Assembly: GCA_002269645.1 (NCBI GenBank)
Contig: NIVC01001181.1
Location: 248,001 to 312,000, forward strand
Source of the DNA: Macrostomum lignano
Taxonomy: Eukaryota
Direction of reading: 5' to 3'
Length of the DNA stretch: 64,000 nucleotides
Each line of letters opens with the position of its first letter. Within the stretch, counting starts at the first letter, position 1. The notes below the pieces were generated by a model that saw only the letters and a list, made by a program, of their open reading frames with translations, did not search any database and was not told the origin of the DNA. A program made the translations under genes and the position numbers. Positions 8,901 to 17,900 of this stretch are shown in pieces.

Positions 8901-11900
8901 CAGGAAGTCCAACACTTTGCCAGTGTCATCGGCCTCTAGCTCCGGCCAGCTTCGCCACGGCGGCTTCTGCCGACGCTGTTCGACGTCGCCGTCGGCCAGT
9001 TCGCCAGCAGCCTGGACAATGTCTCCAAGAACGCGCAGCGTCTTCAACCGCTGTGTCAGTCGCTGGACCAACGCGTCGTCATCTTCAGTAGTTGTTGCTA
9101 GGGCAGTCAGTCGGCTGAGACACCTGGAGAGAAGGCCGACTCCCTGGCTAGCTGAGAACCTGGTTAGACAGGCCAGGGCCAGCCTAGCGGCCAGTTTCGG
9201 ACAGGCGACCGAGTTTAGACAGGCCATGCTGGATGCCGAATCGCGTAAGCTGGCCTCGCTGGACAGGTAGCGGCTGGCCAGGTAGTCTGTGAAACGGCCT
9301 GTAGGCAGGCTGTCTCTGGTTTGGCGTTGGCAGGAGCGCAACACCTGGGAATGGTGGGGCGGTTGTGGGATAATTTCAATCTTGATTTTTTATAGCCATG
9401 GGATAATTTTAATCTTGGGATTTTTAACAGCGATGTGATAGGATAATATTAATCTCCGGATTTATAACAGCGATAGGGTGATATTAATCCTGGGATTTTT
9501 AATAGCGATAGGATGATTTTAATCTTGGAATTTTTAATAGCGATAGGATAATTTTAATCTAGGGATTTTTAATAGCGGTGGGATAATTTTTATCTTGGGA
9601 TTTTTAACAGCGATGGGATAATTTTAATCTTGGAATTTTTAATAGCGATGGGATAATTTTAATCTTGGAATTTTTAATAGCGATAGGATAATTTTAATCT
9701 AGGGATTTTTAATAGCGGTGGGATAATTTTTATCTTGGGATTTTTAACAGCGATGGGATAATTTTAATCTTGGGATTTTTAACAGCGGTGGGATAATTTT
9801 AATCCTGGGATTATTACTAAGCGATATTCAAGCAGTAGATTTAGTACTAGTGAATAAAAATGATCTAAGCCGCTCACTAGCAGGGCCTGCTGGCAATCGT
9901 CAGTCTCAGACATTCGTTCAACAGTCCGGGCCACCATAGCCAGATGCGGCTCGGAGCCTGGATGATGCAGCATCCGCTTGTACATGTGACCAGTCCAAGC
10001 TTCAGTTGGCGACCGGCTGCACAGTTTGAGCAGGGACTCAACTGGCCCGGCTAGGGGACTCTGAGCCAGTGGGCCGAAATAGCGAAGCACGTGCTGGCCA
10101 AGCTGGGGAAACGAGTGGGCGAGGCGCTGGTACAGGTAGCTGCGAATGTCGATACCGCCGAGGCTGCCAACGTCTGTCTGGCAGATTGTTGTTGCCGTGG
10201 AAGAATTGTTGCTACTGGAATTGGGACTGCGCGACATTGTCGATATGTGCTGAAAATCGCTGCCGCTGCTGTTGCTGGCCGCTGCCACCGAGGCGTAGTG
10301 ATCCAGATGGAGGGTCAGGCTGAGGTTGTCCGTGACCTGGTCGGGACAGGCCAAGCTTACCAGGGTGGCCAGCAGCGGAGAGGAGTCGCGCAGATAGTCC
10401 AGCGTTGCCATGGTGATGCTGTAAGGACGCTTCGAATCTGCGAGGGTTTCATTGAAACTGCGATTTTCAGATTGGGATCAAGGGATGGGATTCTGGGACT
10501 GAGATTACGGAATGGGATTCTGGGACTAAGATGACGGAATGGGATTCTGGAAACTGGGATGACGGAATGGGATTCTGGGTCTGAGATATCGGAATGGGAT
10601 TTTGAGACTGAGATGACGAAATGGGATTCTTGGACTGAGATCATAGATTGGAATGGGATTTTGGGACTGAGATGACGGAATGGGATTTTGGGACTGAGAT
10701 GACGGGATGGGATTTTGGGACTGAGATGACGGAATTGGATTCTGGAACTGAGATGACGGAATGGGATTCTGGAAACTGGGATGAAGGAATGGAATGGGAT
10801 TCTGGAAACTGGGATGACGGAATGGGATTTTGGGACTGAGATGACGGAATGGATTTTGGGACTGAGATGACGGAATGGGATTTTGGGACTGAGATGACGG
10901 AATGGGATTTTGGGACTGAGATGACGGAATGGGATTCTGGGACTGAGATGACGGAATGGGATTCTGGGACTGAGATGACGGAATGGGATTCTGGGACTGA
11001 GATGACGGAATGGGTTTCTGGGACTGAGATGACGGAATGGGATTCTAGGACTGAGATGACGGAATGGGATTCTGGGACTGAGATGACGGAATGGGTTTCT
11101 GGGACTGAGATGACGGAATGGGTTTCTGGACTGAGATGATAGAACGGAATGGGATTTTGGGACTGAGATGACGGAGTATGTCTGAAGAGTCAAGGATCAA
11201 GGAATCGGGAATCGTGACGCAGTGGATGAGGCTAAAATATTAAGATTATAAAGAAGACTTCAATGTATTCAATGGAATTCCACACGGGGACACATATAGC
11301 AGCACCAATACCATCAACGGTAGATCCGGAATCCGCAGGCGTGACCAGTTTGCCCACAGCATTAGCGCTTGGATAATCAATACAGACTCCAAACTCGCTT
11401 GTCTCCGGCTCAGCCAGCCGGCACCGAATCTGCTGCTGCTGGCCGGCAGAAGAAGAAATCGAACTGTCTGAACTGCCGCCCAGATGCGCCCAAGTCTGAG
11501 CAAGCTGCGGGCCCGAGCACAGGCGTTTTAACGAAGCCAGGACACTAGCTGGGTCCCATAGCCGATTATCTGCATTAGCACTGTTGCCGTCGTTGACTCC
11601 TCCTGCCGCTGCGCTTCTCTGCTGCTGCAGCATCGGGGCATAGTAGGCCAGCCAGTGAGGCAGAACCACTGAAGTGCCGCTGTCGTTGAATGCAGCAGAA
11701 ACAGCTTCGGAGCTTGACGAGACAAAAGCGGTGAAAAATTGATGACAGGATTTGCTCAGATCCTCTTTGATTGAATGAGCCGAGTAGGTCTGGAGTGTTG
11801 TAGAAAAGGTGGCTTTTTGGTTGATGGTAGATTTTCAAAGCTGTTTTATGAAGGTTGTCTAGGTCATTTTTGAAACTTTTCAAGCTTATCTGAGAGTTTC

Positions 11901-14900: not shown

Positions 14901-17900
14901 CAGACAGACAGACAGACAGACAGACAGACAGACAGACAGACAGAAAGACAGACAGACAGACAGACAGACAGACAGATAACAGATAGACAGACAGACAGAC
15001 AGTCAGACAAACAGACAGACAGATAGACAGACAGACAGACAGACAGACAGATAACAGATAGACAGACAGACAGACAGTCAGACAAACAGACAGACAGATA
15101 GACAGACAGACAGACAGACAGACAGACAGATAACAGATAGACAGACAGACAGACAGTCAGACAAACAGACAGACAGACAGACAGACAGACAGTCAGACAA
15201 ACAGACAGACAGATAGACAGACAGACAGACAGACAAACAGACAGACAGACAAACAGACAGACAGACAGACAGACAGACAGACAGACAGGAGAAAAAAGCA
15301 GATAATACAACTAAAAAAATTACGAGCCAAATCTTTTTAATTTGACAGTTTAAAAGTAAAAATTAATTTCCACTAAAAGTACATAATAGCAGCGAATTAA
15401 AAGCAGAAATTGAATCGATACTCACACTTGAACAAGCGGTTCAGTTCTTTAGCCAGGCTCACAACAGCTTGGTGTGGGTCTCGGGGCTGCCCAGTCCAGC
15501 TCTCGCAGTCGTTGACAACGCGGCAAAGAATCTCAGTGGCCTTTTGTTCTGATGGATTGAGGTGTTAACGGCTGAATAGAGATGATCCATGGTTTAAATT
15601 GTTGAACTCAAGAATTTACCAAGTTAATCTTTCACGTCGAATAGTAGTCTTCCTGTTCGTGATCCAAGTTTACACGCTTCTAATCCAGATCTACCATATC
15701 GAATCTCAGATCCACCATAACTAGTTCCAGATCTACCATATCGAATCTCAGATCCACCATAACTAGTTCCAGATCTACCATATCGAATCTCAGATCCACC
15801 ATAACTAGTTCCAGATCTACCATATCGAATCTCAGATCCACCATAACTAGTTCCAGATCTACCATATCGAATCTCAGATCTACCATATCTAATCTCAGAT
15901 CTACCATATCTAATCTCAGATCTACCATATCTAATCACAGATCTACCATATCGAATCTCAGATCTACCATATCGAATCTCAGATCTACCATATCTAATCA
16001 CAGATCTACCATATCGAATCTCAGATCTACCATATCTAATTCCAGATCTACCATTTCTAATCACAGATCTACCATATCTAATCTCATACCAACCATTTCT
16101 AATCACAGATCTACCATATCTAATCACAGATCTACCATATCTAATCTCACATCTACCATTTTTAATCTCATATCTACCACTTCCAATCCCAGATCTACCA
16201 TATCTAATCACAGATCTACCATTTCTAATCTCATATCTACCATATCTAATCTCATATCTACCATTTTTAATCACAGATCTACCACTTCTGATCCCAGATC
16301 TACCATATCTAATCTCATATCTACCATATCTAATCACAGATCTACCACTTCTAATCACAGATCTACCATTTCTAATCTCATACCAACCATTTCTAATCAC
16401 AGATCTATCATTTCTAATCTCATATCTACCATTTTTAATCACAGATCTACCACTTCTAATCCCAGATCTACTACATGTATATCTAATCTCATATCTACCA
16501 TATCTAATCACAGATCTACCACTTCTAATCACAGATCTACCATTTCTAATCTCATACCTACCATTTCTAATCACAGATCTATCATTTATATTCTCATATC
16601 TATCATTTTTAATCACAGATCTACCACTTCTAATCCCAGATCTAAATTTCTAATCGGAACCCGCCATCTAGCGCAGCACTCACCTGTCAGACTAAAAAGT
16701 GTAGAATCAGGCTCCGGCCTGGCCCTCGGTTCGATGCTGATCTTAGGCATAGAGTTCTTGATGATAATGTGTGACAGGTTGAGTCCCAATCTAGCGGCTA
16801 GATCTTCCAGTCTAAAAAAGTGAGCTCAGGACATTGTGTACTTGATAAAACTGTAAGAAAAAAGCAATTCTTCAATAATTTTTCGCTACTAACTTGGTGG
16901 GCGACACGTGAAGCTCAAAGATCAACTTTCCTAGCGCGGATGAAGGCGACTCAGCCAGAATTTCGAACGGATGAGCAGCTGCATTACTACTCAGCAGGTA
17001 TTTTTGATCCAACCGACTGCTGTAAATCTTCGCTAAAAAGTCGGCCAAAGCGCTAACGTGTTCCCACAGGGCTTCTAGGAAATTGTAGAACTGCAAGTTG
17101 CACTTGGAGCTGAAATAATTTCAATTAGATTTGTTAACAAATGGAAAGCATGTGTACGTTGTGGGGTGAGAGGCTTTTATGGGGGTTGGTGGATGGGTGA
17201 TGAGAGGGAATGTACGTTGTGGGGTGAGAGGCTTTTTTGGGGGTTGGTAGATGGGTGATGAGAGGGAATGTACATTGTGGGGTGAGAGGCTTTTTTGGGG
17301 GTTGGTAGATGGGTGATGAGAGGGAATGTACATTGTGGGGTGAGAGGCTTTTTTGGGGGTTGGTAGATGGGTGATGAGAGGGAATGTACATTGTGGGGTG
17401 AGAGGCTTTTTTGGGGGTTGGTAGATGGGTGATGAGAGGGAATGTACACTGTGGAGTGTAAGAGGCCTAAAGAAGAAAAAAGAATTAAAAACATTTGACA
17501 CAAGCCGCTAACTATCCTACTAACAGTAAAAAGTAGGAAATATTTCGACAGCAAAACACTCACAATCCGCTAAATTGAAACACGTTACTAGCAGGTGTAG
17601 AATTTTTAGCCGCCGACCTGCACAGCGCCTGAAACAGCTGGCCGGGATTGGCGGCGCCTGTCGGCTCGTTTGAAAGCGACCAATGCGTCGGCGAAAATGC
17701 GGCAACAGAAGCGCTGCGTCGGCCGCCGAGACCGCCGCCATCGCTGCCGCCGCGGAAACTAACAGTTGGAGAAGCGGCAGAGCCAGAAGAAACTGAACCG
17801 AAAGAAGTGTCCGTTGTTTTAGCCGCGGCCGTTGTTGTTGCCATAGCAACCCGGAATCGAGCTCCGCAGGCGCCAATTTCTAGTAGAGCCTCTTCCAGAT

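Follow-up and report, generated by a model that had tools for sequence, protein, structure and literature searches.

Does spastizin (ZFYVE26/SPG15), encoded by a human disease gene (hereditary spastic paraplegia), carry a DUF547 domain, and if so, is this a flatworm peculiarity or an old feature of the protein? The question is raised by a 64,000-nucleotide stretch of the genome of the flatworm Macrostomum lignano (hereafter "the window"; NCBI GenBank assembly GCA_002269645.1, contig NIVC01001181.1, positions 248,001 to 312,000 of the forward strand), in which an earlier note had proposed a spastizin gene with an internal DUF547-like module. All coordinates below are those of the window, and the spastizin gene lies on its minus strand. 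Our analysis of the predicted protein confirmed the presence of an internal DUF547 domain inside this gene. We consider it highly probable, as the best explanation of gene identity, module and ancestry taken as one, that the host is spastizin and that the module is ancestral to at least cnidarians and bilaterians.

The module, a predicted globular alpha+beta domain of ~200 residues plus linkers, is encoded mid-gene by five minus-strand exons (B to F), each flanked by AG and GT, with junction phases 1, 0, 1 and 0. Exon B (15426..15548, phase 1 at both ends) specifies a pre-domain helix of the insertion that aligns with "RHPE..V..LL..L..LMK" in orthologues, while exon C (14542..14825) encodes a variable linker and then the start of DUF547, including an FxxNxxNxxxxH motif. 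Exon D (14302..14458) corresponds to the centre of the domain, with a Y, a G and an S that are nearly invariant in orthologues, exon E (13323..13435) covers the site where canonical DUF547 would have its cysteines, and exon F (11312..11789) encodes the end of the domain followed by a low-complexity linker. When the spliced peptide was compared with Pfam PF04784 (DUF547), we obtained a significant match (E=3.3e-10, 40.4 bits, with a gathering cut-off of 27) between peptide residues 111-243 and profile positions 6-124 of 125, which corresponds to 14616..11736 and crosses three introns; no NCBIfam model was found for it. DUF547 proper excludes exon B and the first (5') two thirds of exon C, which are linker or pre-domain helix. 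The five phase-compatible exons of the earlier note were thus recovered, its three quoted peptides are all found in the minus-strand translation, and the same junctions, 16684>15548 and 13323>11789, were read from the sequence. As for the span of 11720-15548 that it had given, the exons within it are borne out, but the DUF547 match is confined to 14616..11736 and the last exon probably ends at 11312 rather than 11720. This predicted end (donor G|GTATTG) was chosen since it is the only donor that is phase-compatible with the acceptor of the next exon at 10437. Another candidate end, at 11259, was rejected because it is out of phase with all three acceptors considered for the next exon.

A more specific module profile, built from the spastizins of 21 other animals with the flatworm excluded, matched the flatworm module with 73.3 bits (E=1.9e-22), compared to 3.8 bits for the best of 200 shuffles. 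Both this profile and Pfam match exons D and E, and in exon F the extended module reaches 11622. The flatworm module keeps all nine residues that are invariant or nearly invariant in the profile (F, N, N, H, Y, G, S, L and P). In the FxxNxxNxxxxH motif of the 21 orthologues, F and the first N are invariant, and the second N and H are nearly so.

The host gene extends from at least 19.9 kb to 5.4 kb, which represents its N-terminal two thirds including the FYVE finger, and sequence homology identifies it as a spastizin orthologue from a Macrostomum-type flatworm. In phmmer searches, the assembled protein matches invertebrate orthologues in collinear order (best Owenia, 6.9e-64; then Branchiostoma, 6.9e-52, and Haliotis, 1.5e-49), with one alignment to Haliotis that continues from the upstream flank into the module, and tblastn matches of six orthologues descend along the minus strand from 19859 to 5511. 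The most upstream spastizin-similar stretch was detected at 19707..19859 (tblastn with Owenia and Branchiostoma, and phmmer); open frames above 19.9 kb, up to ~25.4 kb, may encode a divergent N-terminus. On the 5' side of the module, tblastn of Branchiostoma, Owenia and other orthologues identified a solenoid exon at 16894..17109 (acceptor 17109 or 17090, donor AA|GTTAGT at 16894). It is followed by exon A (16684..16811, AG/GT), the last solenoid exon before the module, which matches the orthologue motif "...LNL..hIIv.CCPxI" and human ZFYVE26 residues 1212-1228. Together, these two exons have human ZFYVE26 as their top PDB sequence match (8yad_C residues 1118-1228, E=0.012). On the 3' side, the first solenoid exon after the module (9900..10437; acceptor 10437, provisional 3' border, tblastn matches 10477-10007) shows similarity to the motif "LxYlk..S.LvAtlVsL" of orthologues and to mammalian ALAFLKSRSKILAMVACL. 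For this exon we did not retain the donor at 10361, strong as it looks, because it would split a motif kept in all orthologues and because the sole nearby in-frame acceptor would leave a 24-nucleotide intron. The module is therefore inserted between two solenoid motifs, both of which are identified in its flanking exons, and the seven-exon splice product from 16811 to 9900 has no stop codon, canonical junctions throughout and compatible phases.

Further downstream, a solenoid exon at 8826..9344 (approximate borders) aligns with bird ZFYVE26 PLWNDWQDLKKACADDPQAIMDIILKAKDYELCEEWGRLY. The pre-FYVE solenoid exon (6356..6862; donor GTAAGT after 6356, provisional 5' border), which was found by tblastn of orthologues and includes LVYAKKALE, has human ZFYVE26 as its sole PDB sequence match (8yad_C residues 1584-1737, E=2.2e-6). 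The pre-FYVE solenoid block ("...PLLIxEQLLMN...YAxKAL") is present in the flatworm gene and aligns with bird and mammal fragments. Finally, the FYVE zinc finger is encoded at 5394..5948 (approximate borders; Pfam FYVE E=4e-14, 52.9 bits; orthologue tblastn 5810-5511). Human ZFYVE26 matches on both sides of the module, a FYVE finger and collinear orthologues thus uphold the host assignment of the earlier note. Other queries were less productive: a 2142-residue rough concatenation lost the ZFYVE26 match among PDB sequences, which was recovered with shorter pieces, the piece downstream of the module had no match among PDB sequences, and the pre-FYVE plus FYVE region retrieved one unrelated FYVE protein only from a large protein database. 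Since coordinates 1-5367 contain tandem repeats only, the post-FYVE third of the gene lies beyond coordinate 1, and the part encoding the C-terminal TPR_ZFYVE26 domain (PF25569) falls outside the window.

When the spliced DUF547 peptide was searched against the same kind of large protein database, only one entry was found, M. lignano UniRef100_A0A1I8F540, which is already named "DUF547 domain-containing protein" in UniProt/UniRef. This entry spans the same exons from upstream of the module into it, with 100% identity over the 41 residues of exon B, and is probably another copy or another assembly of the same gene. However, it is a 535-residue fragment with frame errors that ends mid-domain, short of the FYVE part, and it was never linked to spastizin. 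The orphan fragment can now be joined to a spastizin gene in the Macrostomum annotation. In the exon C linker, at 14714-14790, the fragment reads ~13 residues in a different frame and then regains the frame, which would reflect either compensating indels between copies or errors in one of the assemblies. This difference sits in the variable linker, outside DUF547.

We next asked how the module is distributed among spastizins. A search profile made from bird and mammal ZFYVE26 fragments and single flatworm exons was run against 1.84 billion representative proteins, and 50 long ZFYVE26 orthologue representatives were aligned; human fragments from PDB alignments, used as queries, had retrieved partial vertebrate sequences only. 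The same module was found at the same site in 30 of the 50 orthologues and was missing from the other 20. The two groups are sharply separated, with 346-532 residues in the module columns of the alignment for the 30 carriers, compared to 129-164 for four vertebrate-like representatives and 50-145 for sixteen others. Likewise, the module profile scored 77-246 bits on carriers versus at most 0.1 bits on the rest, and Pfam DUF547 matched 29 of 30 carriers (16/16 and 13/14, scanned as two sets) but 0/20 non-carriers. For Branchiostoma, the Pfam score was 65.1 bits (E=8e-18). All 50 orthologues have a FYVE domain, and TPR_ZFYVE26 was detected in 41. Most carriers have the strict motifs FxxNxxNxxxxH and Yx[IVL]GxxG at a distance of some 620-1020 residues from the FYVE finger, on its upstream side; the aligned block, which also holds DPRxxFxL..G..SSP and LPxxLxWY, is flanked by the same solenoid motifs as the flatworm module. 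Mean pairwise identity among the 30 carriers is 27% in the module versus 22% in the flanking solenoid; where kept, the module is at least as conserved as the solenoid around it.

Carriers outside arthropods include Hydra vulgaris, the rotifer Didymodactylos, the tardigrade Paramacrobiotus, the molluscs Haliotis and Argonauta, the annelid Owenia, the crinoid Antedon, the acorn worm Glandiceps and the amphioxus Branchiostoma. Among arthropods, the module is found in Strigamia, Centruroides and Penaeus, and in the insects Anabrus, Bacillus rossius, Hetaerina and Chelonus. Named non-carriers are a frog (the one named among the four vertebrate-like representatives), the flies Musca and Wyeomyia, the beetle Sitophilus and the mites Blomia and Sarcoptes. 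In a mammalian fragment (P0020), the two flanking motifs are ~90 residues apart and joined by a partly low-complexity stretch. The occurrence of the same module at the same site from Hydra to amphioxus places it in the common ancestor of Cnidaria and Bilateria. The simplest reading is a single gain before that ancestor and then no fewer than three or four independent losses (vertebrates, the named Diptera, a beetle and astigmatid mites). The earlier note had left open whether the module was lineage-specific or ancestral and lost in vertebrates. The first option is refuted by the Hydra-to-amphioxus distribution and the second holds, with carriers on both the cnidarian and the amphioxus side and none among the four vertebrate-like representatives, although losses prove wider than had been supposed. 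In this sample, module loss does not track the reported loss of AP-5, which is said to be missing from insects (PMC3744948): Orthoptera, Phasmatodea, Odonata and Hymenoptera keep the module while Diptera and the beetle are without it, and vertebrates have AP-5 yet no module.

How much of this was known? Pfam detects DUF547 above its cut-off in public spastizin orthologue sequences, which together with the DUF547 name of the flatworm fragment means that the architecture is known to databases and that the gene in the window is a previously unlinked member. In the literature that we searched, no paper paired DUF547 with ZFYVE26, or spastizin with "domain of unknown function", and the evolutionary pattern appears to have gone unremarked.

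What might the module do? AlphaFold2 models the Branchiostoma module as a compact alpha+beta domain, with a mean predicted local distance difference test score (pLDDT) of 84.2 and a predicted template modelling score (pTM) of 0.83. Our broadest proposal, for which we would claim somewhat less than an even chance, is that an ancestral, functional DUF547 domain has been overlooked in spastizin and that it adds a ligand-binding, lipid-binding or enzymatic activity to the SPG11-SPG15 scaffold at lysosomal membranes; on this proposal, it would have escaped notice because the usual study species (human, mouse, zebrafish and Drosophila) either lost it themselves or come from groups in which it was lost. 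If true, it would provide a first cell-biological context for the orphan DUF547 family. A narrower version, which we advance still more tentatively, is that the module juts out from the SPG15 alpha-solenoid on a surface loop and serves as an accessory that binds a membrane lipid, a small ligand or a partner protein, rather than as a thiol-based enzyme. It would work beside the FYVE finger, which binds phosphatidylinositol 3-phosphate (PI3P), during docking of the SPG11-SPG15 scaffold to late endosomes and lysosomes. Repeated and clean loss points to an auxiliary rather than a core role. Moreover, since several insect orders keep the module while insects are reported to be without AP-5, its role would be tied to SPG15 or SPG11, and it seems to be independent of AP-5.

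The main competitor to an accessory binding module is that DUF547 is here an enzyme, or forms a specific small-molecule pocket, with an activity missing from vertebrate spastizin, rather than being a passive dock. We regard this as unlikely, while giving it more weight than any other alternative. It would account for the residues that show little or no variation from Hydra to amphioxus (F-x-x-N-x-x-N-x4-H, Y-x-[IV]-G and a Ser), for a module more conserved than its scaffold, and for the fusion of canonical DUF547 to glutaredoxin in plants, which hints at chemistry. It fits poorly with the clean loss of the module in at least three or four lineages that kept spastizin, with the replacement of the presumed canonical cysteines and with the fact that no DUF547 protein has a known activity.

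Alternatively, the module at this locus could be a decaying relic, in a possibly non-functional copy among several paralogues of a duplicated genome. The flatworm sequence is the most divergent of the set, long low-complexity linkers surround the module, and the frame of exon C departs from that of the UniRef fragment over ~13 residues. On the other hand, the seven exons are free of stops and frame breaks, all nine conserved positions are kept and the frame difference spares the domain, which makes decay improbable. Marginally less probable again is that the DUF547 exons form a gene of their own within a spastizin intron, or are cassette exons that the main transcript skips. This would be in keeping with exon joins that were read from sequence, with a UniRef fragment that ends before the FYVE part and with shorter RefSeq isoforms in some orthologues (e.g., Bacillus rossius X3, 2673 residues versus 2821), but it sits badly with phases that fit on both sides of an open seven-exon product, with the single phmmer alignment to Haliotis that covers flank and module, and with 30 orthologues, predicted independently of one another, in which the module lies between the same pair of solenoid motifs. 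Lastly, a flatworm-specific acquisition, by exon shuffling or by horizontal transfer of a DUF547 gene into spastizin, which the best-known spastizins (human, fly and beetle) would suggest by lacking the module, is refuted by the same module at the same site in Hydra, rotifer, tardigrade, molluscs, annelid, arthropods, crinoid, acorn worm and amphioxus, and by a better fit to the spastizin-type than to the general DUF547 profile (73 versus 40 bits), and we give it virtually no credence.

Several points nevertheless count against an ancestral spastizin DUF547 with an accessory binding role, and should be weighed with it. The exon joins are predictions, the donor at 11312 is weak, so that the end of exon F is the least certain border, and the sole Macrostomum model in public databases is a fragment in which part of exon C is read in another frame. 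The taxon sample consists of the best 150 matches of one search and covers metazoan spastizins other than those of tunicates and cyclostomes. When the predicted Branchiostoma module was compared with PDB structures using Foldseek, no match was obtained at E<=10, the human SPG15 chain included; a Foldseek comparison with viral models returned noise only, and the module profile had no match among PDB sequences. The N-x-x-N-x4-H signature, which is common to canonical DUF547 and strictly kept, would fit a catalytic or ligand-binding pocket too, and the role advanced above for the domain is conjectural.

An ancestral DUF547 in spastizin would matter to two fields, hereditary spastic paraplegia/AP-5 biology and the study of the orphan DUF547 family. 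For the first, it would mark a site, at ~residues 1230-1330 of human SPG15, where an extra domain can be, or once had to be, accommodated by the scaffold. For the second, endolysosomal membranes and the SPG11-SPG15 coat would offer a cellular context to a family that is widespread with no known function. Moreover, pairs such as wasp versus fly or amphioxus versus vertebrate are natural presence/absence contrasts with which the module could be tested.

The surroundings of the spastizin gene are rich in repeats. Nearly every spastizin intron (317-24633) has its own long tandem-repeat array, with units that differ from one intron to the next: (TCTG)n over 2.8 kb at 317-3123, a 14-mer at 3577-5202, a 27-mer at 10485-11175, 23/43-mers at 11894-13134, a 47-mer at 13703-14187, (CAGA)n at 14829-15288, a 21-mer at 15678-16655, and 17- to 63-mers further upstream. 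Several of these arrays are open in one or more frames and inflate naive lists of open reading frames. Beyond spastizin, five cytochrome P450 genes are clustered on both strands at 40800-64000, four on the plus strand (~41.0-42.2, 48.3-50.0, 51.5-53.4 and 62.3-64.0 kb) and one on the minus strand (44993-43363; two exons, Pfam p450 E=3.9e-32 and 2.7e-52), and their nearly identical C-terminal exons point to a recent tandem expansion. Between spastizin and this cluster lies a separate WW-domain gene on the minus strand (28500-30573; Pfam WW E=2.7e-12 in the open reading frame 30573-30169). A 166-residue open frame on the minus strand (37152-37649) has no Pfam match.

Among known systems, the closest to the flatworm gene are the spastizins of Branchiostoma belcheri (XP_019625924.1, UniRef100_A0A6P4YW08), Haliotis rufescens (XP_046355808.2), Owenia fusiformis (CAH1802978.1) and Hydra vulgaris (XP_012560340.2). 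They share its order, solenoid, DUF547 module, solenoid and FYVE, with the same flanking motifs, while the flatworm protein is far more divergent and has low-complexity linkers between the module and the next solenoid exon. In human spastizin (PDB 8yad chain C), the solenoid on both sides of the module site and the FYVE finger are homologous to those of the flatworm, but neither the flatworm module peptide nor the module profile matched human ZFYVE26, even at E<=10. Human SPG15 has been described as solenoid-FYVE-solenoid, with a FYVE finger that binds PI3P and docks the SPG11-SPG15-AP-5 coat on late endosomes/lysosomes (bioRxiv 10.1101/2024.06.14.598999; PMC3744948). By our comparison, this description fits only lineages that lost a conserved globular domain.

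Canonical DUF547 (Pfam PF04784) belongs to the same family as the spastizin module, as judged by Pfam score and near-complete coverage, but is found in different hosts. In plants, class IV glutaredoxin-like proteins are GRX-DEP-DUF547 (PMC13621322), and Arabidopsis AT2G23700 (MIP1-leucine-zipper-DUF547) localizes to a polar plasma-membrane domain without having a transmembrane segment (bioRxiv 10.64898/2026.08.17.745151). These other DUF547 hosts, in which the domain is joined to membrane-targeting parts or the protein is located at a membrane, point to membranes. Spastizin-type modules form a DUF547 sub-family of their own, with longer internal loops and ~200 residues compared to the 125 positions of the Pfam model, and it is to this sub-family's profile that the flatworm module is closer. 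The same holds for the cysteines, which the earlier note had rightly described as replaced. Where the presumed canonical motif is HFALxCxxxSCP, the flatworm reads V-S-P-P; in orthologues, the second site is S/T/D-S-P and the first is variable. On this alignment, the flatworm V-S-P-P is no oddity but the rule of the spastizin-type sub-family.

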